Positions 13,989 to 56,379 of a DNA stretch of 64,000 nucleotides are shown here, in pieces. A program made the translations under genes and the position numbers. Below the pieces are notes generated by a model. The model ran no database searches. It was not told where the DNA came from and saw nothing but the letters and a program-made list of their open reading frames with translations. This DNA is from Blastocladiella emersonii ATCC 22665 (taxonomy: Eukaryota > Fungi > Blastocladiomycota). Position 1 is the stretch's first letter, and every line of letters begins with the position of its first letter. The stretch spans positions 1,178,001 to 1,242,000 of the forward strand of contig JANHCV010000004.1 in NCBI GenBank assembly GCA_025594325.1. Reading direction: 5' to 3'.

Positions 13989-14192
13989 TTTTTCTCGGTG
14001 TCGATAATGAGTTCAAACAAATCGAAAGGAAGCAGCAGTCTTGTAAATACATTTTCAAGTGTCGACCTGCCTCGAAAATTTGATGGCCCTTGATCCGCAC
14101 GTGCGCGTGTCCTCGACGTGTCGTGTGGCTCGTCAGAGCGACGAGCGGCACCAACTTTCGCTCTCTGTGCCCCCTACTGCTACGCTAAACGA

Positions 14193-15901
14193 ATGGATTA
14201 TTTTTCACACGACTTGTCGCATTCGCTTGCGGCCATGCCGGAGACCGTGCTTGACGCGCTTCAGCCCTTCCTCGGCCCAATCGAGACCACGCGCCTCCGC
14301 GCAACTTGCCGCAGCCTCGCCAAGCTCTCAGTGACTTCCTTCGCTCCCGAGCGCCTCAAGTGGTACCTCGACCATAACAGGCATCGCTGGGCCATGGATC
14401 CTCATACGGGCGGCCCGCTTCTTGATGCTCGAGGCGAGCGCGCCTCTGTCCTGAGCCAGCTGCTCGATTCGCCGCTCGTTGATCCTCTTGCCAAAGACGG
14501 CCGTGCGCTCCTGCTGGCTGCTACCCACGGCGACGTTGCCGTTGTTCGACGCTATCTTGTGGATCCCGAAACGCGCTTCCCGCATCTGTCCGAGGACACA
14601 AAGACCGCTTTCAAGGATTTCAAACGGATGTCTGATCTGTGCTCGAGTGCCTTCAACGCTCTCACCGATGCAGCCGACCAGCTTTCAACTAGCGAGCACG
14701 GTATTCAATGCGCGCACCAGATTCTTCGCCTGCTGGTCGCGCATGGACTTGCGGACTGGAGCCAGGTCGCGCTGGCTCACTACAATTTGTTCCACTCCTC
14801 ACTTACGGACCAGGGCTCGGAGCTCGAGCCGCTTCCCCGCTTCGATCTTTCACAAGCCGAGTTCTCGGACGTTGCCCGTTTTCGTGTCCCCGCGTTGCGC
14901 CTGCGACTCTTTGACGTCGAGAAGGCTCGACTGGCCTCCGAGCTCTGCGTTTCAACAATCATTGGCGATGCCGAGCGTGTCGCGGCCGCACTGCCGCACA
15001 TGTGCGATGACGACGAGGACTACTCGGGCCCCGAGTGGCGCGACGTGTGCACGGACGCCGTCTACCTTGCGCTTCACGGCGACCAAGATCGTGTCCTGTT
15101 CGAATTCACTCGCCCTGGCCGTGATAGCATTGTTGACCTGGCCGGATACTGTTTGCCCGAGGCCGCAACGTATCCCAATGGTCAAGCATCCGCTTTGCTC
15201 TCTATGGCGATTCGTTTGCGCGCGGTCAAGTGTGTTCGCCATCTCAGCATCGTCGTTTCTCGCAACATGCCATCGCGAATCCTTGCCGAGGCGTTCGAGT
15301 CCAAGGACCCCGAGCTTGTCCGTAATTTAATGGGCGCAATCCTCAAGCTCGAGGCCGAGGAGCGCTCCCCTGAATCCGACGAGCTACTTGCAAAACTTCG
15401 TTCGATGAGTCGTAGCCAGCGAGACCAGAACCAGTTGTCACTTTCATCCCTCGAGCACTTGCGCACTTCATTCTCGAACACACCGAGCTTCCGCTCGACC
15501 TCGTTTGCATCATCGTCGAGCTTACGCCCAAGTACGCCTTGCTCGCAACCGACCTGTACTTTGGCGCCGTCATCGTTTCTGGACTCATCGATGTCAAAGC
15601 CGAATCGTTGCTGCGACTGCTTGTCGATTATGACGGTTTCGAGACCATCGTGCGTGCTTCGACCGAAGATGGAGAACTGCCCCAAGGTGATCCCGTTCGC
15701 TGGCTTCTTGATGTGACCGGGTTGACTGGTGGCCTAGGACCCTTCACCGAGGCCGCTCAAGTCCCGGTCGACAAATTGGCTGCTATTAGTGCAATGTTCA
15801 ACGGGATTACCCTCGCGGACGACTACGGGCCGCGCGTTCCGCGGACTATGATTTACGCTGGCCGAGGTCGCGGTTGGGTTCCGTACCAGGACTGGGCGTG
15901 A
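14193..15901 (+). CDS. F-box-like plus ankyrin-repeat protein, probably joined by an intron (15322-15419) or a frameshift to a C-terminal F-box-like/unknown domain
   Basis: ORF 14118..15716 contains LAAMPETVLDALQPFLGPIETTRLRATCRSL (F-box-like) and DPLAKDGRALLLAATHGDVAVVRRYL (ankyrin-like). After ~15420 this frame becomes Ser-rich and looks non-coding, while another frame (15417-15901) encodes a domain conserved in the copy at 16.1-16.7 kb. Confidence 0.6.
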
Positions 15902-16028
15902 GCGCGCTGTGGCAGAGCGCGAGCGTTGTCTTTTGTTCTCAAAGATCATACCATACTGATTCGATGTTTCATTCGGTTGTTGGAAATGTGTCTCGAGTTT
16001 CGGCAGGATTGACCTCATCGTGCACCTT

Positions 16029-16680
16029 ATGGTCCGCGGTGACCGCGAGCCTAGTCTTTCGCTGCTGAATCGACTCGGGTCCAACTGTATTACTGACAGT
16101 GCTGGATACAGTCTCCCAGCTCGAGCCTGACGACGCTTGGGTAAACTCGAATGTTGTAGCACAGTTGAATGGCCAGCGAGCCCCGAACAAGACGATTGCC
16201 TCGCTTCCCGAAGCGCTAGTACACTACAACTTTCATGCAGACCAGCTCCCAATTGGCTTGGTCCGCATCATCATTGAACTCACGCCGAGGTCAGTGCCGC
16301 TCGCGACCAACGCTTATTATGGCGCGGTAATTATCGCTGGACTGATTGACGCCGAGGCCGAGTCGCTACTGCGGCTGCTTGTTGATTACGATGGGTTCCA
16401 GTACATTCTCCGCGCCTCGACCGACGACGGCGAGCTTCCTTTGGGCGATCCCGTTCGCTGGCTCCTGGACGTAACGGGATCGAAAGGCGGCCTTGGGCCA
16501 TTCACTCGACCCGCTGAGACCATGTTGATACACGATTATTGTCCTGTGTTGGGAGTGAAATACGCTCCTCCGCGCGTCATGATGTATGCCGGCCGAGGTC
16601 GCGGCTGGGTGGCCTACGACAAGGTTGCCTGGGTGGTGTGGGACGCTCCGGCAACGATCCTGCTTTGTTTCCTTCTATAA
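16029..16680 (+). CDS. Paralog of the 15417-15901 domain (F-box-like motif plus unknown ~120-aa domain); probable 2-exon gene
   Basis: LPIGLVRIIIELTP...YYGAVIIAGLIDAEAESLLRLLVDYDGF...GDPVRWLLDVTG...GGLGPF...MYAGRGRGWV aligns with the upstream copy. Putative ATG at 16029 with an intron at 16039-16099 (GTGACC...CTGACAG); the donor is weak. Confidence 0.6.
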
Positions 16681-17320
16681 TCGTCCAACTCAACCAATAA
16701 TTCATGTTAGGCGAAGGTCGATAAGAAAAATGCTTCGTTTGCTTCGTCTGGCAGGGTCAGGCATGCCCGAGAGTGATCCATCAGCTGCGGGTAACCTTGC
16801 AACAACTCGGGCAGCTTCCGCGCCCCTGCCGCTCGTCCGATCACAACAAGTGCTGATATTGCACGAAGTGGTGTAACATTTATCACTAGTTCTATTGCGT
16901 ACTGTGAGCGCCTGGCGCGATGCAGTGATGTCATCGCGGTCAGCTCAGCATCGACGCGTCGCGAAATCACGTTTTGTCTCCGCCGCGGTGCGAGACGTGT
17001 CGGTTCCGCTCGAACCCACTCGCGTATCATCCCCCACCCTCCTCCGAGACTATCCCGGCGCCCACCGGGCGCCCTAGTTGCTCGGCGCGAGGGTATCCCG
17101 TAGTCCGAGTCGACACTTGGCGCAACGACGAGTGCTCGCTGGCCAACGCATAAAACGCACGCTCACCGACTTTTTCGTCTCGTCGCCTCCGCTCGCCGTG
17201 CCCAAGTCTTGTAGCTGAGGATCTCGCTCAAGATACTGGACATGGCGCCCGTTAACCCTCGCTGTGAACAAGTTTCGTGACGGATCAATATGTGTGCAAT
17301 ATATATATCATCATCCCGTC

Positions 17321-43105: not shown

Positions 43106-44150
43106 CTACACTGCCGGCGCCAGCTCGCGCGCGTCGACAAACTCGTACTCGTCGTCGCTCTCCTCGTCGTCGTCCGACTCGACGGACTGCTGCTGGCCGC
43201 GCACGACCTCGCGGTCCCGCGCGACCGCCGCCTCGACGTACGGCACTTCGAGGAGCACCGAGCGCTCGACGGGCAGCGGGACGCCGCACGCGACGTCCAC
43301 GGCCGCGGCCCCCGTCACCTCGTCTAGCACGCCCGCCACCATGCGGTCGATGGCCGCGTTGCACCGCTTCACGGCCATGGCGATATCGTGCTCCATCTCG
43401 TCGGTCCCGCACAGCGTGCTGACCACGATTTTGGGAACCGGCGGCGCGTACTGCGTCGCGCTGACCGAGGTCGCGGACGCCGTCTGCGTCGCCGCGGGGG
43501 CCGCGGGGCGCGGGATGTACGACGGAGCCTCGAAGATGGGGTCGGCCGCGGGCGAGACGGGCGCAGGAACGCTGCGCTCACTCGCGGTGGCCGAAATCGG
43601 GTGCGTCCACCACGGCGCGGGGATGGTCGTGGCCGGGGCGGGCGCCCACCACTTGGCCGCGTCGATGTCGCTCGCGCCCACAGCCGCCGCGACGTCGAAG
43701 CGCATGTACTCGGAGCGGATAGCCAGGAGCTGCGCCGAGAACGCGGCCGACGCCGCGGCGAACAGCTGCTCGACCTCGTCGGCCTCGCGGGCGAGCGCCG
43801 CCTCGAGGAGCGGCAGCGTGTCGCTCTCGTCGTCGCCGATGAAGCGCTCAAAGCCAGCGGACGTCGAGGGGGAGACGGGCGGCGAGGGCGGAGTGACGAA
43901 GCGATTGGGCACGGCGAACTCGGTCTTGCCGCCGTCGAACGAAAGGGTCGGCGGCAGCGACTTGAGCGTCAGGTCGACGGCGGGCGTCGGGTGCAGGAGC
44001 GCCTGCGCCTCCTCGTCGTAGACGGCGGGCTCGGTGTACGCCGTGGGGTTGAACCGGGAGTACGAGGCGGAGGGGAGGTAGTAGCCGTCTGGAGCAGTGC
44101 TGAACGTGAGCGATGGACACGCGCGGATGCGGCGAGGTGGGCGTACCCAT
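43106..44150 (-). CDS. Hypothetical Ala/Pro-rich protein (~330 aa), 1 intron after ATG G
   Basis: ATG G|GTACGC...TCCAG|AC gives MDGYYLPSASYSRF..., continuous with ORF 43106..43912; codon usage is GC3-biased; no family recognised. Confidence 0.6.
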
Positions 44151-44536
44151 GATGAGAAAGTTGGGAGCTTGTTGTAAGGTGAACTACGCTCAGTCGATGT
44201 CGCTGAGAACTGGGCGTAGCGATGGTTGGAGGACAGGATGGGAGCGGGCCGCCGGCCGCTTTATAGCCGCTCCCCCGCGCCTAAGCAGTGCCAGTCAGCG
44301 CAAGCACTATGAACTCATTTTCACCGTCGCGTCATCGCGGACGGTTCGAGACTTCAGGAGCGATGCTACGCCACCACTCGGCTGGTGCGGTGTGGCGACG
44401 GCTTGTCTCGCAACGCGTCTCGCAACGGTCACATGATATCGAAACGCGTGAACCGAGGAGCAATGGAAACCGCACGACCCGCGTAAAAATTGGGAGAGTA
44501 CAGTACATATATTGAGATGAGAAACAACAGCGACGA

Positions 44537-46003
44537 CTAGTAAAAATGGCCTTCTTTGAGGTCACGAACCGCGAACCCAAACCCAGTAAACTTGAGCGGG
44601 TACGGGCGGGTGAGGAAGTGCGCCATGTGCTCGACGTGCTTGATCTCTGGGAACAAGGCGAGCAGGATGGTTGGCGACGGGGTCACGATTTGCGGGTAGA
44701 ACGGGTTGTAGAGATGGTTCGTGACTGTCAAGCGTTTCCAGTTCCAGGTCGTGGTATGGCCAGGGAGAAATCGCCACAGGACGTTCTCAACTAGGTACAG
44801 GACGCCGCTGTGGACGCGTTCCTGGGCCTTGCCGTCGGCTGCAACCGTGGACACGATGTACCGCACAAGCATCGACACGGAGCCCCATTTTTGGCTAGAC
44901 GATCCAGATTCGCGAGGTGAGTTGGGTTGGCGTGACGCGGCTCCAGATAGAACGTAACGCACTAGCTTGTCCCGTACGGGTTATCCATCCCAAACTGGTT
45001 GAGCCCAAACGAGTTATCTTCCTTGGTCCCGCTTTTTTCTTGAGTCAAGCGCTCCGAAAACAAGGTAGTCGTGTGGGACCCGGTTGCGCTGTGCGTCTGG
45101 AACTCGACCTGCTTCAACACACGCGCGGAAGCGGCCGCGCGCATGTTGATGCACATGAGGATCGGACCAGCTTCGACCGGGTCGACGTCGTGAACGAGAA
45201 GAAAGGGCGCGAGAGGCAAGTTGTGGACTCGAGTCGCATGCTCAATGCACCCAGGGATGTCGCCGTGGAGTTCGGGGTCGAACGGAAACACGTTCCGCGG
45301 AAGCGTGGTTGGTGTCGCGCGGAAAAGCGAAAGCGGTCGGCAAGGCGGGGTGCACCGCTTCGGATTGGTGATAATTTCGTCTACTTTGGCAAAGAACTGG
45401 TGCATCTCTGCGATCAGAGTCTCAAAGTCCAAGATGTACACAGGGGCGCTGGTCAGCTTGTCTAGGGAAGTCTAAGAGGTTAGCATTTGATGCAAGTCGT
45501 GGCGGGATCTGTGAATATATGTCATGCGTACACGCAGGCGGTGCTGAGGGAAGATAGCCGAGCAACGAAATGACGGCGGCCCAATGGCACCCAGCTCCAA
45601 CTGCGCGCATGACGTTGCCGTACGCGGCCACGACGTAAACGTCTTCGAGGCAGGTGTAAGACTGGCCGTAGCACCCGCGGGCTGCGGGTAAGGCCCGGTC
45701 GGTCACCCAGTCATCTCGCCAAGTACCAGCGATCTGAAGACCGTGGATGCTCGCTAAGGTGGCGCACGTCTCCGCGCCGGCGTAGCGCAGAGCCATGTAG
45801 TGCGCAAGCAGGGCGGCAAGCAGAACATCAATGTTGACGAGCTGGAGGCACATGCTGTTGGGGAACGGCGCTTGCCGAACTTCGTCGAGGGTGCACGACC
45901 AGTTCTGGACCAAGCGGTGTTTCGGCGCGAGGTAAGGAGGCTGCTTGCGCGACGGCCTTGGTGCCGCGGGCGCCGCGGGCCCATTGTCGAGTTTCTCAGT
46001 CAT
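44537..46003 (-). CDS. Tandem unknown family, copy A (most divergent, lower GC), 3 exons
   Basis: ORFs 45422..46084, 44962..45441 and 44537..44962 carry FPNSMCLQLVNID, AYGNVMRA, SAPVYILD..EMHQFF, RPLSLFRAT, HSGVLYL..FLPGH and TPSPTIL, matching copies B-E. Confidence 0.8.
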
Positions 46004-46219
46004 AATGGCGCAAGAAATGCTGTTGCGACAAGTCTTCAAGCTATTCCATGTGTTTTCATGAGTTGTTGAAGGAGGAGGGATCACAGGTCGCCTCGCCAGC
46101 GCTCAAAAACTTGAAGTATGGCTCAAAGATCGTCACATGATATCTCGTCGCGTCCTCTCCTCTCGCTTCCAGCAGCGCCGAGCAGGCCCTCCTCAACGCG
46201 CGTAGTATGATAAATCAAC

Positions 46220-47632
46220 TCAACTAGTGTATCCCGCAGCCTCCCAGAGCGAGACGGGGGTTGCAAAGTACATCTCGACAATCTCGACGTGCTTGATCAC
46301 GTCCTCGCCGTAGAGGTCCATGAGGAGCAGCGGCGACGGCGTGTTGCCGTGGCCGTCCTCGGCGTAGTCAGGCAGCGGTACGGGGACCGGGCGGCAGTGT
46401 GGGTTGTCGGGCGAGACGTGGCCGGGCAGGAACATCCACATGCAGTCCTTGTCAAGGAAGAAGATGCCGGCGTGCAAGGTATTGCCTGCTGCGCTGGAGA
46501 CCAGGTAGCGCACGACCGTGGAGACGTTGATCGAGTCCGAGCTACACGGAGCAAAGTCAGCACTAGTCGATCATGACGAGCGAATGAGAGCTGCCGTACA
46601 CGACGCCGATGGGCACGTTGAGCCCGAGCCGGTCAAACACCTCGTCGGATTCGGGGTACATAGTAGTCGACGTGAAGCCGGGCGTGCCGTTGACGCGGCA
46701 CTTGACAGCCTTAATACCGCGGGTCTGCGCTGCGGCGACAAAGTTGACGCAGGTCAGCAGGGGCTTGCTCATGTCGACGACGGTACTCTCAATGGTGAAC
46801 GACTTGTCGAACTCGTAGGCCACGGTGATGAGATCGAGACACCGCGGGACGGTGCCGTGGGCCTGGGCGTTGTAGACGAAGACGCCGCGCGCGGGCGTGC
46901 GGGCCGTGGCGCGGAACAGCGAGCGAGGGCGGTTCCGCTTGTGTCCGGCGGAGCCGAAATCGGCGACGAGGAACAGCGTGTCGATCTTGGCGAAGAACTC
47001 GTGCATCTCGGTCAGGCACCGCGCAATGTCGAGGACGTAGACGGGCGACGCGCACAGGTCGGCTACGAAGGCGAGGCGGTGGAAGGCGTCAGTCGATCGC
47101 TGTTCACCGCACGAGCACCACCGCACCGCGCGGCAAACGTACCGAGCGAGGGACCCGACGGCAAGAGTCCGAGCATCGCGACGATCGCGGCCCAGTGCTG
47201 CCCGGCGTGCAGGGCGCGCATGACGCGGCCGTAGGCGACGAGCAGGTCGCGAGGCGGGAGCACCTTGAAGCGGGTCCCGTACCCCTCCCGCGCGGCGCGC
47301 TGGGCACCCGGCGTCACCCACACGTCGGTCTCGATCGCGTACGCGGCGCCGTCGGGCATGACGAAGATGGCCTCGACGTTGGCCTCGGTGTAGCTCAGCG
47401 CGAGGTGCCGCGCCAGCAGCGCCGCGTGCAGCGTGTCGATGTGCACGATCTGCAGCGACATGGAGTTCGGGAAGCGGCCGGCGCGGATGCCCGCGAGCGA
47501 GCACGCCCAGTAGTCGACGTGCGCGAGGCCCGCGGTGAGGAAGGCGGGCCAGTGCTGCGGTGGGCGTGGCGGGGCGCTGGTGGGGGTCGTGGCGGTGGCG
47601 GTGGTGGTGGCTGCGGTGGGTTGGCTGGTCAT
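46220..47632 (-). CDS. Tandem unknown family, copy B, 3 exons
   Basis: MTSQPT...GRFPNSMSLQIVHID...AAREGYG...QHWAAIVAMLGLLPSGP|ADLCASPVYVLD...RPRSLFRAT...FDRLGLNVP|VRYLVSS...LHAGIFFLD...FLPGHVSPDNPHCRPV...HVEIVEMYFATP. Confidence 0.85.
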
Positions 47633-48023
47633 GTTGCTGTGCTGTCGAATGAAGATGTCGGTGGATGAGCGCGGGAGAGAGAGAGAGCGGGAGGTTCGGA
47701 CCATCAAGTACAGTGGAGGCGCGCGGGCGGGGTGTCCCCTGGCGGCGGCCGCCGCGAGTGGCCACGGCGTCTGGCGTTTGCTCCACTCACTTGATGGACG
47801 TCATTTCTTGGCGCACTGTCAGAATGAGCCGGCAAAGGCGCTCATGTGTTTGCGCGGATCCGGCGGGTGCTTGGGAGCCCGTGCACCGCACGTCTGCACC
47901 GCGGTGGCGGCCGTGCGCCGTGCACCGCGTGTGGAGCGCGATCTCGGACGCCGGCCCATCACTCACTCGCAGTCTCTCCACGGCACCGCATGTTCGCGCC
48001 AGCGCGTGTTTACGTCTGTAACC

Positions 48024-49457
48024 TTAGTCTGTATGGCACACGACCTCCCAGTAGGACGGCGGCGTGGTGAAATACAGCTCCGCGACCTCAATGTGCCCGA
48101 TCACGTCGTCGCCGTACATTTCCCGCAGCACGAGCGGTGATGGCGTGGTGCCGTGGCTGTCGTCGACGTGGTCGGGGAGCGGGGCGTAGACGGCGCGGCA
48201 CTGCGGGTTGCCGGGCGAGACATGCCCGGGGAGAAACATCCACTTGCACTTGAGACCGTCATCGTCGTCGTTGTGCTTGCCAGGTTGCTTCTCGGCGTGA
48301 TCGAGAAAGAATACGCCCGAGTGGAGCGTCGTCGCGGATGCGCCGCCGTCGCCGCTTGTCACGGTGTACCGCACGGCCATGGCGACATGGGTCGCGTCGG
48401 AGCTACACACGCGCGCGTGTTGGTGAGTACGTTGCAACGACAAGTGTCGGGCAGAACGAAGACGCACGCGATGGGTTCAGTCGCAGAGAGTCCGAACCGG
48501 CCGAACGTCGCCTGCGACTCGGGGAACAGGGTCACCGAGGTGACGCCCGCGGCGCTGTTGATGCGGCACTTGACGGGCGCGATGCCGCGTGCGCGGGCCG
48601 AGTCAAGGACGTTGACGCAGGTGACGTGCGGCTTCGTCCAGTCCACCTTCGCGCCGAGAAGCGAGAACGAGTCCTCGAAGTCGTACCCCTTGACCACCGC
48701 GTCGAGACACCGCAGGACGGTACCGTGGACCTTGGCGTCGAAGGTGAAGATCCCGCACGCGGGCGTCGTCTCCGTCGCGCGGTACAGGGCGCGCGGCCGG
48801 AACCGCGTTCCAGCTGCGCCAAACTTGGACGTGAGCAGGGCCGTGTCGACGTCGGCGAGAAACTCGTGCATCTCGGCAAGACAGCTAACGAGGTCGAGGA
48901 CGCACACGGGCGCTGAGCAGATCTCGCCTACCGCCGTCCACATCGTTAGCCTCCTCGTCCGATTCCTCTCGGCGCGCAAAATGCGTACTAAGCGCGGGCG
49001 CAGACGGCAGCAGCCCGAGGAGCGAGATGGCCGCGGCCCAGTGCTGATTAGCGTGCACCGCGCGCATAATCTGGCCGTATGCCGTGAGCAGCGGTTGCGG
49101 CGCCATGGACGTGAAGTGGACCCCATAGCCCTCGCGCGCTGCACGCACGGCGCCGTCGGTCAACCACACGTCGGTCTCGGGTTCGTACATCCCAATCATG
49201 CTGTTGATGGCCTCGACGTTGGCCTCGGCAAAGCCCACCGCCATGTGCCGCGCGAGGAGCGCCGCGTACAGGGCGTCAATGTGCACGATCTGCATCGACA
49301 GGCTGCCCGGAAACCGCCCCTCGTGGACGCTCTTTAGAGCCGAGGACCACGTGTAGACATGATTGAGCCCGCGCTTGAGGCAACGAGGCCAATAATCATC
49401 ATCGGCGGCGGCGGGCCGAGTCGGGGCAATGCCAGTGTCCTCGGGACGACTGGTCAT
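48024..49457 (-). CDS. Tandem unknown family, copy C, 3 exons (alternative in-frame ATG at 49502)
   Basis: ORFs 48885..49505, 48359..49144 and 48024..48467 share all family motifs; intron positions and phases match B and E. Confidence 0.85.
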
Positions 49458-49857
49458 AGTAGGCTGGATCTCGGCGTGCAACGTAGGGTGAGCCCGTTGC
49501 ATCAAGTGCCGTCGTCTTTACGACACAGTTTCATGGATTTATGCGTTGTATGAGGGAGGGAGAGCGAGTGTTTGAGCTTTGATCGGGCGGCTGCTGCGCC
49601 ACCTCGCGAAACGTGGGCGACGGGACTCCCCAGGGCGGCTTGTGCGTTGGTTTTCGCTCCACCTCAGCAAAGGAACGATGTCGGCTTCGTGCTTTCACAG
49701 GAGTCGCTCTTCGCCATGCATCGCGCCATCCTGAATGCGGTGCCCACCGTATTTCACCTGTGCACCGCACCGCACGCAAATCGCTTTGTGGCCGGGACCG
49801 CCGATCAACTAACGCTCGCGTAACATCGCGTCACATCACATCATATCCATCATCAAA

Positions 49858-51333
49858 CTAATCCCATTCCCATTCCTTGTACAAGGCCGACAGGTACGTC
49901 AGATGGGTAGCAAAATACATGTGCAGGATCTCGACGTGCGTGATCCCGGGGCCGTACATGTCGCAAAGGACGAGCGGCAACGGCGTGATGCCGAACCCGT
50001 CGCCCGTCAAGAGGGAGCGAGGAATAAGGACCGGGCGGCATTGCGGGTTGTCGGGCGAGACGTGGCCGGGCATGAACATCCAGTGGTAGGTGATGCCGCG
50101 ATCATCGTCGTCCACGAGGAAGAAGACGCCTGCGTGGAGGCTAGCTGACGACCGGCCACCAGCTGACGACTGGCCACCATCCGTGGTCGCCGAGGAGACA
50201 AGGTACCGCACGAGCATGGAGACAGCCACAAAGTACGAAGCAGGGTGCGCGACAAGCCGGTCGTACGAAGCGGGGCTGTTCTCGAAGCTCATGGGCACAT
50301 TGACCCCGAGCCGGTCAAACGCCGCCTTGGTCTCGGGGAACATGGTTACCGAAATGGTGCCCGCGGCGCCGTAGATACGGCAGTTGACGGGCTCAAGGCC
50401 GCGGGAGCGGGCGCCGGCGAGAAGGTCGACGCAGGTGACGCACGGGCACTGTTGGTCCTCTTCTGTCGACTCGATTTCGTCCCGCGGCGGCCGCACGCCG
50501 TGCGACTCGAGCGCGAGTTCGAGGCAGCGCGGAATCGAGCCGTGCGCGGCAGCGTCAAACTCGAGCACGTTGCGAGCGGGCACGGTATCCGTTGCGCGGT
50601 ACAGCGAGCGCGGGTGGAAGCGCAATGGCCTGGAACGAAATGTAGTCTCCAGAAGGTACTGGTCCACTGCAGCAAAAAACTGGTGCATCTCGGTAAGACA
50701 GCGGCTGATGTCGAGGACGTACACGGGCGCTGAACACAGATCGGCTACACGAGCGAGGGTCAGAGCCAAGGCCTTGTAAATGCAGCGAGGTGTGCGCATA
50801 CCAAGCGTGGGCGCGGATGGGAGCAGCCCTAGGAGCGCAATAGTTGCAGCCCAATGCTGATCAGCGTGTAGCGCGCGCATAATCTGGCCGTACGCCACGA
50901 GCTGCTCATAGCCAGTCATGGACGTAAAGTGGGTCCCGTAGCCCTCCCGCGCCGCGCGTACGGCGGCGTCGGTCACCCACACGGTGCATGCGTGGTAGTC
51001 GCCGGTATTCGGATCGAAGACGGCTGACCCCACGGAGATGACATTGATGTTGTTTCTGGTATAACTCAGTGCGAGGTGCTGCGCAAGGAGCGCCGCGTAC
51101 AGGACGTCGATGTGCACGATCTGGATCGACAAGCTGTCAGGAAACCGCCCGTTCCGGACACTGGCCACGCTGGAAGTCCAGATCTTGATGTGGTCGGGAC
51201 CGGATTCCAAGTATTTCGGTGGGTCTGGATTTGGCGGCTCGGCCGTCGCCTCGGCCGTCACCTCAGCCGTCACCTCGACGGTCACATCGGCACTCAAGTA
51301 TTCTTCAGCTTGAGTAGTCATGGCAGGTTGCAT
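49858..51333 (-). CDS. Tandem unknown family, copy D; intron 1 (57 nt) is in frame and intron 2 appears exonised
   Basis: The 491-aa uninterrupted ORF contains all motifs and a canonical GTATGC...CTGAC...TAG intron 1. Confidence 0.85.
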   Translation of the reverse strand: MQPAMTTQAEEYLSADVTVEVTAEVTAEATAEPPNPDPPKYLESGPDHIKIWTSSVASVRNGRFPDSLSIQIVHIDVLYAALLAQHLALSYTRNNINVISVGSAVFDPNTGDYHACTVWVTDAAVRAAREGYGTHFTSMTGYEQLVAYGQIMRALHADQHWAATIALLGLLPSAPTLGMRTPRCIYKALALTLARVADLCSAPVYVLDISRCLTEMHQFFAAVDQYLLETTFRSRPLRFHPRSLYRATDTVPARNVLEFDAAAHGSIPRCLELALESHGVRPPRDEIESTEEDQQCPCVTCVDLLAGARSRGLEPVNCRIYGAAGTISVTMFPETKAAFDRLGVNVPMSFENSPASYDRLVAHPASYFVAVSMLVRYLVSSATTDGGQSSAGGRSSASLHAGVFFLVDDDDRGITYHWMFMPGHVSPDNPQCRPVLIPRSLLTGDGFGITPLPLVLCDMYGPGITHVEILHMYFATHLTYLSALYKEWEWD

Positions 51334-51495
51334 TAAAGTGCAAGATGGACAAGTTGCATCAAGTGTCAGGGCCGAAAGGTCGCAGTTTCATGGGATCATG
51401 CGTTGCATTCGTTGGCGAGGGGAGAGCGAGAGCACGCCGCGAGACAGCAGCTTCAGCACGCTCCCCGCTGCCTTCCCCGCTTCACTCATGTGATT

Positions 51496-52923
51496 CTACT
51501 CAGCGTTCATATATCCTACCACCTCCCCCAACGAAGTCGGCGTCGCAAAGTACATATCGATGATCTCGACGTGCCCGATCGCGTCGGCGCCGTACATGTC
51601 GCGCAGGCACAGCGGCGACGGCGTGACGCCGTACCCGTCGCCGTCGTCCGCGTGCGGCGGCAGCGGGACGACGACCGGCCTGCACTCTGGGTTGGGCGGC
51701 GTCGCGTGGCCGGGCAGGAACACCCACTGGCACAGGTGGCTGTGGTCCGGGTCGTCGTCGAGGAAGAAGACGCCCGTGTGCAGCGTGGCCGCGGGTCGGC
51801 CGCGGGCCTTGGGCGGCGGCGACGGTGGCGAGGTCACCGTGTACCGCACGGACACGGACACGTTGACTGAGCTGGACCTGAACGTTGCGCGCGCGTGGGT
51901 TGCGGTTAGATCAGCGCGTGCGTGGGAGTGAGGGAAGCGACTCGTACGCGACACCCACGACCGCGTTCAGCCCGAGCCGGTCGAACGCGTCCGAGTTCTC
52001 GGGGAACAGCGTCACTTTCGTCGCACCCGTGGCGCCGTGGACGCGGCACTTTCTCGGCTCGATCCCGCGGGCGCGCGCGCCAGTGAGCAAGTGCACGCCC
52101 GTGACGTGCGGCTTGGACCAGTCCGTGACGTTGCTCATGAGCGAGAACGCGTTCTGGAGGCCGTGCTCCTCGACGGCACGGTCGAGACACCGCGGGATGG
52201 TGCCGTGCGTGGCGGCGTCGAACGCGAGCATGCCGCGAGCGGGCGTAGTGTCCGTTGCGCGGAACAGCGAGCGCGGCCGGCACCGCGTCGGGCCGGGCGA
52301 GCTGAACGTCATAGTCAAGAGGACTTTGTCGACCTCGGTCAAGAAGTCGTACATGTCGGCAAGACATCGAGGCAGGTCCAGCACGCAGACTGGCGCGGAG
52401 CACAGCTCGGCTACACGCGAGAATCAGGTCAGGGGCCAGCTCGCCGCCCACCAGTCAATCCGACCGTACCGAGCGTCGGCGCGGACGGCAACAGCCCAAG
52501 CAACGCAACCGCCGCGGCCCAGTGCCGGTCAGCATGCAACGCGCGCATGATCTGGCCGTACGCGGCGAGGAGCTGTCCCTCCGCCATCGCGGTGAAGTGG
52601 AGCCCGTATCCCTCTCGCGCCGCACACACCGCCTTCTCGGTCAACCACGCGTCGTCTTTCGGATCGTACTGCTCGGGCAGAATCGCGTCGAGGTTGGTCT
52701 GCGCGTAGCCGAGCGCCATGTGTCGCGCGAGGAGCGCCGCGTAGAGCGCGTCGATGTGGACGATCTGGATCGACAAGCTGTCGGGGAACCGCCCGTCGCG
52801 GACGCTCGCCAGCGCCGAGGACCATGTGTAGACCTGGCTCGGCCCGCCTTCGAGGCACGTTGGCCACGCTGGGTTGGTTGCGGAGGGAGGAGCGGGTTGC
52901 ATCAAGTCAGACTCGGTTTTCAT
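51496..52923 (-). CDS. Tandem unknown family, copy E, 3 exons
   Basis: ORFs 52429..52923, 51911..52384 and 51496..51954 share the family motifs and intron positions. Confidence 0.85.
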
Positions 52924-53364
52924 GGGTTCATGCGTTGCATTCGTCGAGGAGAGGGAGAGCGAGCGGGATCAGGGCGGCGGCAGCTCGAGGTGTCCTTGCA
53001 ACAGCCCCTGCTCGCCCAACGCCCTTGAAGCTGTCCGTGGCCGCGGCCGCTCGCCGACCACGGCCATGGTCATGGCCACGATTCTCGTTTTTGGTCGCCG
53101 ATGAGCTCTCCCAAGCTCCACAATGCCCATGTGCGCGGTGCCGTCGGCCGTTCACCGCATCGCACATGCTTCGCTTGTGGCCAGAGTCCTCGGATCGTCA
53201 TGTACCACCGCGGCCACCGCGGCCACCCTGAGCACCGTGGAATCGTACATCTATCATGCAAAGTTGAGGGAAAATCGGGCGCGGGCGTGGGAGTGCAAGT
53301 GCAAAATGCGGAGGAAGGGAGAAAGGACACACGAAGGAGGGGAAGGAGACTCACACATCTCCGT

Positions 53365-55824
53365 CTAAGCAAACTGGACGCCGCTCTCGATACTCCCGAT
53401 ACTACTAACACTCGCGCGGCGGGGCTGCTGGAGCTGCTGGGCCGACGGCTGGTGGACCGTGACCGTAGACGCAGCGACGACGCCGCTACCAGCTGCACCC
53501 GCGGGCATGGGCGCGGACGTGTAGCTGTGCACCGACGGCGACCCGTTGGCCGCCGCGTCACGGCGGATCAGCGTCTCGGCGGGCAGGTACAGCTCGTCGG
53601 AGCTGGCCGTGTGCACGCTGGCGTTCTGCGCGCGCGGCGTCACGGGCGAGGTGACGACCGTGGTCGTCTTGCTCGTCGTCACCGCCGACGTCGTGATGAC
53701 CGGCGACGTGACGATGGTCGACGTCGTCGCGAGCGTGTGCTGCTGGTGGTACTGCTGCGCGCCCGCGGACCCGGGGCGCGTGATCCCAGCACCAGCCGCC
53801 GAGTTCGACGCGACGGCGTCGCTCGCCGTCGACCGCGTCGTGTACCCGGACATGCGCGACATGCGGTTCGCGTTGTTGCCGCTGCTGCTCGCCGCCTCGG
53901 CATCCACGCCGGCGGCAGCCGAGCCGGCGCCGTAGTCGGACACGGACGCGCTGTCGCGGTGGATGACGGGGATCACGGGGCGCGTGGTGACGACGGGCGG
54001 GTGCGACTTGGCGGGGCCCATGTACAGGATGTTGAGGTTGGTGGCGGGCGTGGTCATGGTCGGGTGACCCGCCGAGTTGGGCCGCTGCTGCTGCATCGGC
54101 TGCGCCTGCTGCTGCTGCTGGTACGGGTCCGCCATGTCCATCTGGTACGCGTCGTACCCGTAGTCGAGCTGCGCGGGCGCCTGCTGCTGCTGGGGCTGCG
54201 AGTACATGTTGTGCGCGACGCCGGCACCACCGGAAGCGAGCGTCGACGCGCCCATGGTGCCAGCGGACGAGGCGGCGGCGGCAAGCGGCGCGGTCGGGCC
54301 CGAGAGGCCGAACTGCGGGCCGTTGGACCCGAGCTGCGGCGACGTGGCCGCGACGTTCACCTTGGTGGAAGCGGCGCCGACGTTGTTGTTCGCCGACGCG
54401 TTGGTGGTGCGGAACCGGGCCGCGGACACGGCGTCGCTGAGGCGGCGGTTATCCTTGGCCTTGCGGCTGCGGTTACGGCAGTACCATGCGACGAGGGCGG
54501 CGGCCATGAGCAGGGCGACGCCGGCGCACGCGATGCCGACGATGACGGGAACGGTCCAGAAAGTGGTCGCGTTCCCGCCGGCGGTGCCGTTGGGCAGCGC
54601 GACGGTCGGGACCACGTCGCCGAAGATGAGGGACGCGTCGGGCGGCGAGTACTGGGCGGTCCACCCGGTGGTGGCCTCGGTGATGCTCGAGAAGTCGTAG
54701 AGGTGCATGGCGGCGATCGGGTTGGCGCCGGCGGCGCCGTCGAAGACGGCCATGCCGAGATCGGCGACGTCGCGGACCTGGAGCGACGAGTACCCGAACG
54801 ACACGAACACGTGGCGCGCGGCGCACGTCAGCTGGTGGAAGGCGCGGCCGACCGGGTAGACGGCGGCGTCGGCGCGGTTGGCGTCGTAGTTGGCGGCGGC
54901 GGGGCGGTACACCGGGTTCCAGGTGAACGAGTCCTTTTCCTTGTCGAAGACGAGCGCGCTCATGTCGGCGTAGAAGGCCGAGTTGTCCGTGTTGGTGCCG
55001 CCGAACATGTACACGAAGTTGCCGATGGAGCAGGTCGCGTGGCCGCGGCGCGCGACGGGTGGGACGCCCGTGGCCTGGTACAGCTTCCACGAGTTGTTGC
55101 TGACGTTGTACACCCACACCTCGTTCATCGGGTGCAGCGTACCGTCGGCGCGCACGCCGCCCACGACCGTCAGAAGGTTCTGGTTCTCGCGCAGCGCCGT
55201 GAACGTGAACTGCGTCAGCCCCGGCGGGCCGCCCGACACGGCGTACTGCGTCCACGCGTTGGTCGCGAGGTCGAGCTTCCACAGCTCGTTGGTGCCCGGG
55301 CCGGGGACGCCGAGGACGGCTACACGGGAGGATGGCGCGCGTGGGTCAGCTTCGACACGCTTGACATGGAAGAGAAGAAGGAGCGTACTGTTGGACGCCG
55401 TCTTGGACCCGCCAAACACATAGTACCCGCCGTTCGCGTACGCTACGCCGTGCCCGATCCGCGGCCCGGGTCCGCCACTTGCGGGCGCCGTCGAGGTCCC
55501 CGCGGTCCACTTACCCGTCGCGTCCGAGTAGATGAGGTCGAGCATGCCGCTGCCGAGCGTGCCGGAGGTCTCGACGCCGCCGAGGCACCGGACGTGGTCC
55601 TTGGCGAGCGAGCGGCACCCGGAGCCCGACAGGCCCGAGGGCGCGGCGTTGTCGGCGGCGCGCATCGAGTAGGCCGGGCTCGACACGGGCCACGACTTGG
55701 CCAGATCGACGCGCAGCACCTCCGAGATGGCCGCGGCGCCCGTCCGCCCGCCGATCAGGTACAGCTGCGTGCCCGCGACGAGCCCGCTGTGCCCGTAGCG
55801 CGGCGCGACGGCTTTGGATGCCAT
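53365..55824 (-). CDS. Kelch-repeat beta-propeller protein with a single transmembrane helix and a Gln/Ser/Thr-rich tail; one 69-nt in-frame intron (~55375-55310)
   Basis: Kelch blades PRYGHSGLVAGTQLYLIGG, PRIGHGVAYANGGYYVFGG, ARRGHATCSIGNFVYMFGG and GRAFHQLT. TM segment VPVIVGIACAGVALLMAAALVAWYC is followed by RNRSRK. Confidence 0.82.
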   Translation of the reverse strand: MASKAVAPRYGHSGLVAGTQLYLIGGRTGAAAISEVLRVDLAKSWPVSSPAYSMRAADNAAPSGLSGSGCRSLAKDHVRCLGGVETSGTLGSGMLDLIYSDATGKWTAGTSTAPASGGPGPRIGHGVAYANGGYYVFGGSKTASNSTLLLLFHVKRVEADPRAPSSRVAVLGVPGPGTNELWKLDLATNAWTQYAVSGGPPGLTQFTFTALRENQNLLTVVGGVRADGTLHPMNEVWVYNVSNNSWKLYQATGVPPVARRGHATCSIGNFVYMFGGTNTDNSAFYADMSALVFDKEKDSFTWNPVYRPAAANYDANRADAAVYPVGRAFHQLTCAARHVFVSFGYSSLQVRDVADLGMAVFDGAAGANPIAAMHLYDFSSITEATTGWTAQYSPPDASLIFGDVVPTVALPNGTAGGNATTFWTVPVIVGIACAGVALLMAAALVAWYCRNRSRKAKDNRRLSDAVSAARFRTTNASANNNVGAASTKVNVAATSPQLGSNGPQFGLSGPTAPLAAAASSAGTMGASTLASGGAGVAHNMYSQPQQQQAPAQLDYGYDAYQMDMADPYQQQQQAQPMQQQRPNSAGHPTMTTPATNLNILYMGPAKSHPPVVTTRPVIPVIHRDSASVSDYGAGSAAAGVDAEAASSSGNNANRMSRMSGYTTRSTASDAVASNSAAGAGITRPGSAGAQQYHQQHTLATTSTIVTSPVITTSAVTTSKTTTVVTSPVTPRAQNASVHTASSDELYLPAETLIRRDAAANGSPSVHSYTSAPMPAGAAGSGVVAASTVTVHQPSAQQLQQPRRASVSSIGSIESGVQFA

Positions 55825-56379
55825 GAGGAAGAGGTGGGGTATGGGTGCAGGAGTGGCGTCAAGCGAGGGTGCACGCCCAGAGATAGAGAAGAGATCGCCG
55901 CGACGGAGAGCGGGGGCGCGACTGCAATAAGTCGCGAGGTTGGGCGCTGCTCTCGTTGTTGCAGGATGTTGAGCAGCGTCAAGATTTGCGTTGCCGTTGT
56001 CGCCGACGACGGCGAGTGGCGGCGGCGCCGACGACGAAAGCCAGCCAGGCAGCGGCCTTTGAACGAGCCATCGGGTGCCCGCATGGGCCCGCCCTGCTGC
56101 GGCTGAGTAGCGCCGTGAGCGCACGTGCCGTGTGGCGCGCCCCCTTGTCTCGCGCCGGTCGCGTGAGTTCCGCACGCGTCTCGCGTCAAAGTGGAGCTAA
56201 GCCGAGTGAATGAAGTGGGTTCAGCGCGGTATATTGGTGAGGAGGGAGAGAGAGGGTCTAGCCCGCGTCGCGATAACGACGCGATTAAGTAGCACGGGCG
56301 CGCGCACACACAGGGGGAAGGGTGGGCGAGCACACGACGTTGGAGTGGGGTAGGGTAAAGCGACACACCGCGTCAAGCG

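Follow-up and report, generated by a model that had tools for sequence, protein, structure and literature searches.

Poorly sampled lineages often contain orphan tandem gene families. Those of early-diverging fungi are sets of old tandem paralogues without a Pfam domain or an outside homologue, showing signs of purifying selection and encoding short, basic, mostly disordered chains. We analyzed a window of 64,000 nt from Blastocladiella emersonii ATCC 22665 (contig JANHCV010000004.1, positions 1178001–1242000; genome of 32.6 Mb in 21 contigs), in which positions 44537–52923 carry five head-to-tail copies of a gene on the minus strand, all of them intact. The array resembles the orphan families in each of the evolutionary features listed above; however, its proteins are larger, consist of three conserved modules with many invariant His, Cys and Arg residues, and include a partly foldable beta core. 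Two characterized families also bear a slight likeness to it. The Kelch repeat (Kelch_1) comprises four to seven blades of about 50 aa, whereas the N-terminal module of the array proteins carries a single blade-like signature, with no propeller prediction. The arylamine N-acetyltransferases (NAT; PF00797 / PRK15047) show a weak match through the N-terminal helical part of the model and a weak beta-barrel row in a fold search (Z 3.1), but the two matching regions lie ~200 residues further apart in the array proteins than in NAT.

Five head-to-tail minus-strand genes, all apparently intact, had been proposed here in a first-pass annotation made from the sequence of the window. Tblastn searches with copy 4 and with P0001 (the public model of copy 2) as queries returned three matching blocks per copy, co-linear on the minus strand from 44.5 to 52.9 kb, and repeat analysis placed successive units 1.6–1.87 kb apart, the individual distances being 1611, ~1850, ~1815 and ~1665 nt. 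Both bear out the proposed arrangement, and the bounds proved exact, with the stop codon of copy 1 at 44537 and the ATG of copy 5 at 52923. The copies were indeed intact, in that all 15 exon frames are open. Moreover, six-frame profile searches of the whole 32.6-Mb genome (E ≤ 1) detected each exon module five times and no more, always inside the array, and no fragments, pseudogenes or young duplicates of the family were found genome-wide. The gene models are as follows.

51496–52923, minus strand: copy 5, the first gene of the array, with exons 52923–52470, 52410–51948 and 51877–51496
52469–52411 and 51947–51878, minus strand: introns of copy 5 (59 and 70 nt), from the junction reading
49858–51333, minus strand: copy 4, with exon 1 at 51333–50802 and the remainder at 50744–49858
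50801–50745, minus strand: intron 1 of copy 4 (57 nt, in frame, without a stop)
50266–50228, minus strand: position of intron 2 in copy 4, with a donor-like GTACGA in the right phase and no AG acceptor, read as coding
48024–49502, minus strand: copy 3, with exons 49502–48989 (alternative ATG at 49457), 48927–48468 and 48402–48024
48988–48928 and 48467–48403, minus strand: introns of copy 3 (61 and 65 nt)
46220–47632, minus strand: copy 2, GenBank H9P43_004168 (P0001, 424 aa), with exons 47632–47143, 47062–46600 and 46541–46220
47142–47063 and 46599–46542, minus strand: introns of copy 2 (80 and 58 nt)
44537–46003, minus strand: copy 1, whose divergence is greatest and GC lowest, with exons 46003–45532, 45461–44978 and 44894–44537
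45531–45462 and 44977–44895, minus strand: introns of copy 1 (70 and 83 nt)

The intron 1 site lies in phase 1 directly after an LLPSxPxL motif in every copy, and the intron 2 site in phase 2 a few residues before a VRYxV motif. The introns (57–83 nt) are spliceosomal, with GTAYG donors (GTGCG once), CTRAC branch sites and YAG acceptors, and their splice signals are intact in 9 of 10; two-intron splicing of copy 2 yields P0001 exactly. Copy 4 appears as a single open reading frame of 491 aa because its first intron is short, in frame and stop-free, and the 39 nt at its intron 2 position are most simply read as coding, since no AG occurs before the conserved VRY block. The earlier claim of shared intron positions thus stands for positions and phases across the copies but not for the second intron of copy 4, which lacks the acceptor.

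The products, about 422–457 aa long (~45 kDa), are organized into three modules that correspond to the three exons. The N-terminal one spans ~150 aa and the middle one ~153 aa, whereas the C-terminal one is beta-rich and spans 105–125 aa. The N-terminal tails are variable and rich in Pro, Thr and Ala; in the tail of copy 4, a 12-nt tandem repeat at 51234–51274 encodes (V/A)T(A/V)E repeats. A Kyte-Doolittle scan detected no transmembrane helix (the best 19-residue window scored 1.5 and contained prolines), and no array protein has a hydrophobic N-terminus or signal peptide, in agreement with the first-pass annotation. The products are probably soluble and intracellular, and the more specific proposal of a cytosolic location is consistent with these data.

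We next consider the divergence of the copies, which had been described as heavy in both amino acid sequence and GC. Amino acid identity is 49–58% among copies 2–5 and 36–38% between copy 1 and the others, with 33–63% among paralogues for individual exon modules, and the GC content of third codon positions (GC3) ranges from 0.74 in copy 1, the lowest, through 0.77–0.91 in the others; the description was accurate. In all pairs and all exons, the proportion of nonsynonymous differences (pN) is below that of synonymous differences (pS). Pairwise ratios of nonsynonymous to synonymous substitution rates (dN/dS) are 0.38–0.59, not near 1, the value that had been named, together with absent transcription, as refuting the first-pass proposal, and dS is 0.72–1.40, near saturation. 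Exon DNA flanking intron 1 is on average ~66% identical between copies, whereas the introns are unalignable apart from the splice signals (46–50% after heavy gapping). The frames are open, pN is below pS, and exons but not introns are conserved, which marks the copies as old duplicates maintained as coding sequence. The comparison shows real coding genes under moderate purifying selection in an old, stable array.

The conserved motifs listed in the first-pass annotation were all recovered in the alignments, and long conserved blocks are spread across all three modules, with no single hypervariable surface. Among the 142 positions that are invariant in copies 2–5 are 8 His, 5 Cys, 7 Asp/Glu and 12 Arg. 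Copy 1 retains 88 of these 142 residues and loses four of the five Cys and three of the eight His, and appears to be a strongly degenerate member.

Three database models cover the locus, of which only H9P43_004168 (copy 2) fits the conserved intron pattern. The other two look faulty. P0002 (1176 aa) fuses copies 5, 4 and 3 and skips each C-terminal tail together with the following N-terminus; its residues 1–414 are the spliced copy 5 product, and its end consists of the middle and C-terminal parts of copy 3. P0003 (215 aa) represents copy 1 with aberrant splicing, which omits half of exon 1 and almost the whole of exon 2. The published assembly of 21 contigs was annotated ab initio with funannotate (PMC9730499).

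To what extent the family occurs elsewhere was addressed by sequence searches, in which copies 1, 3, 4 and 5 were aligned and searched exon by exon or via P0001–P0003, not as joined proteins. A five-copy profile with 414 match states, searched against 1.84 billion cluster representatives, returned three proteins, P0001, P0002 and P0003, all of them models of the array itself. The sole database match to the 491-aa frame of copy 4 was P0001, and word searches with the N-module profile and the middle-plus-C profile (E ≤ 10) likewise found only P0001. In total, about 15 billion proteins were searched without finding a relative outside the locus, and pattern scans of metagenome and viral contigs with per-exon alignments yielded none either. 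No copy or module matched Pfam at E ≤ 10, including the HET, NLR and NACHT/NB-ARC domains; PHROGs gave no match, PADLOC gave none at E ≤ 1, and NCBIfam gave noise only, with an N-acetyltransferase model on top. The view of an unrecognised, lineage-specific family is thereby upheld, with no significant match in family or fold libraries and no confident match to a characterized housekeeping family. As far as the databases reach, these searches show a family restricted to one locus and so far to B. emersonii.

The nearest approach to a known family came from the N-module. When single proteins and module-wise profiles were searched against PDB sequences, the only signal besides noise (which included designed ankyrin-repeat proteins) was a Kelch-blade-like motif in this module, where a stretch of 27–50 aa (YDPxxDxW..R.G.G) resembles one Kelch blade and matches designed and natural Kelch proteins with whole-sequence E values of 1e-9 to 1e-4. 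However, these E values are low because the targets carry six near-identical blades, and each stretch scores only 4–8 bits (independent E value 22–370). Internal repeats are absent, the modules showing no mutual similarity in hhalign, and BLASTP detected no similarity between the array proteins and the adjacent Kelch gene. The NAT lead derives from the NCBIfam model PRK15047, which matches residues 54–116 of copy 5 at E 0.042, and from the beta-barrel row in the fold search. This match reaches 13 bits, where the cut-off is 493, and is found in one copy only, PF00797 has no match in the array proteins or in a six-frame search of the genome, and profile searches of the PDB returned no NAT chain at E ≤ 10. 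The position aligned to what we take to be the NAT active-site Cys motif is Gly in all copies.

Structure prediction followed by a fold comparison had been suggested as a check. AlphaFold2 modelled copy 2 with the five-copy alignment at a mean predicted local distance difference test (pLDDT) score of 46, with only residues about 320–410 of good quality (67–87 per 10-residue block). For residues 262–424 alone, the mean was 58, with a core at 70–82 in which a short helix accompanies long beta hairpins. A beta-rich C-terminal core was thus modelled at pLDDT 70–87 in two independent runs; however, the models as a whole were poor and no significant fold match was obtained. The VIA-wide fold search was uninformative for both the whole-protein model (best Z 5.2, on helices) and the C-terminal model (best Z 4.6, Med18/20), and Foldseek found no PDB match at E < 0.1 for the whole-protein model. 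The ESM Atlas gave template-modelling scores of 0.43 or less when searched by shape with the C-terminal model, and no usable match when searched by features with copies 2 and 5.

The results can be read in several ways. The reading that we prefer, and to which we give about an even chance of being right, is that the array consists of five ancient tandem duplicates encoding intracellular enzyme-like or ligand-binding proteins with a putative His/Cys site. One gene, so far known only in B. emersonii, would have given rise to five separate ancient tandem duplicates. The invariant His, Cys, Asp/Glu and Arg residues of copies 2–5 may form a metal- or substrate-binding site, which would belong to an intracellular enzyme-like or ligand-binding protein, and the copies may have become specialized by substrate, partner or life-cycle stage. 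Copy 1, in which most of the invariant Cys and several of the invariant His are lost, would then probably be a non-catalytic derivative or a gene heading to decay. Several points weigh against this reading. No fold or family match backs any catalytic activity, and the earlier suggestion of an enzyme or effector likewise found no supporting family, domain or fold match. The idea that the conserved His and Cys share a site has poor models behind it (mean pLDDT 46 and 58). A dN/dS of 0.4–0.6 is high for an enzyme, a ratio that saturated dS and extreme GC3 distort. In addition, the gene models derive from genome sequence alone and the published annotation from ab initio prediction.

It is also conceivable, although rather unlikely in our judgement, that the proteins represent a new fold or enzyme family that arose, or diverged beyond recognition, in the Blastocladiales, with a His/Cys/Asp site that would serve Blastocladiella-specific chemistry and five paralogues that would split this role, for example in zoospore organelles, sporulation or self-recognition. 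The lack of a fold match does not show a new fold, because the models are weak.

The first-pass annotation had favored a different explanation, in which the array is an allorecognition, defence or toxin locus whose copies diversify by positive selection and birth-and-death turnover. Strong divergence of the tandem paralogues (33–63% per exon module), the fairly high dN/dS, the variable N-terminal tails and the restriction of the family to one lineage are all as expected of such a self/non-self locus. However, no pair has a dN/dS above 1, the conserved blocks extend over all three modules rather than leaving one hypervariable surface, and no HET, NLR, toxin or PADLOC domain is present, PADLOC and Pfam both being empty. 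Birth-and-death evolution is unsupported because the genome contains no young copies, fragments or pseudogenes, and dS is saturated. We regard this explanation as unlikely.

It could further be argued that the copies are silent or decaying relics, that is, open frames without present function, given that they are known from the genome only, that 54 of the 142 family-invariant residues are missing from copy 1 and that copy 4 has lost an intron acceptor. The persistence of five open frames of 1.3–1.4 kb despite saturated synonymous divergence, the retention of splice signals in nine introns and a pN below pS throughout make this a distinctly doubtful account.

A foreign or selfish origin, in which a gene was acquired from a viral genome, a transposon or a different organism and subsequently multiplied, would fit the base composition, since the GC of the array (0.585–0.70 per kb, mostly 0.585–0.65) is below that of most flanks (0.68–0.70). 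However, the introns are of the host spliceosomal type, no dispersed copies exist, no relative was found in viral and metagenome contigs or PHROGs, and the flanking genes are ordinary, encoding a Kelch membrane protein, a rhodanese-domain protein and BI-1. The repeat analysis detected no terminal repeats bracketing the array, on which ground a mobile element was rejected, and we consider foreign origin very improbable. Least credible of all is a degenerate member of a known family, as the Kelch identity fails for its single low-scoring motif, the absence of internal repeats and the lack of a Pfam Kelch or NAT match at E ≤ 10 in any copy, the NAT identity lies below every threshold with neither PF00797 nor a NAT chain in the PDB searches, and the two leads claim the same residues, so that both cannot hold.

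The gene and the open frame adjacent to the array, and the repeated elements next to its copies, are listed below.

53365–56175, minus strand: Kelch-propeller membrane protein gene (Pfam E 2.6e-30) with a long Gln/Ser/Thr-rich tail, directly upstream of the array
43106–43912, minus strand: open frame of 268 aa, directly downstream and co-oriented, without a Pfam match and unrelated to the array family at E ≤ 1
52918–52954, minus strand: conserved 5' leader block of copy 5 (repeat analysis), ~40 nt with upstream ATGs, ending in ...GCAACGCATGAWCCCATGAAA
51386–51422: the same leader block in copy 4
49529–49565: the same leader block in copy 3
46132–46144, plus strand: exact 13-mer GTCACATGATATC, 3' of the copy 2 stop
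44428–44440: identical 13-mer, 3' of the copy 1 stop
49830–49847: degenerate copies of the 13-mer, 3' of copy 4

In copies 4 and 3, the counterpart of the copy 5 start ATG lies upstream of the main frame, which is therefore preceded by short upstream open reading frames. The 13-mer has six matches at two or fewer mismatches, compared with 0.5 expected, and lies ~80–110 nt beyond the stops of copies 1 and 2 in otherwise unalignable non-coding DNA; it could be a 3'-end or regulatory element. Elsewhere in the window, positions 14001–17000 form a second clearly low-GC stretch (0.56–0.59, compared with 0.64–0.75 for the remaining window).

These results correct the public annotation of the locus from three gene models, one right, one a three-gene fusion and one mis-spliced, to five genes. 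If expressed, they would constitute a conserved family of ~45 kDa proteins with no relative among ~15 billion predicted proteins and no recognisable fold, in a fungus, B. emersonii, that is under development as a zoospore-sensing model. Families of this kind point to likely places for lineage-specific biology and new folds.

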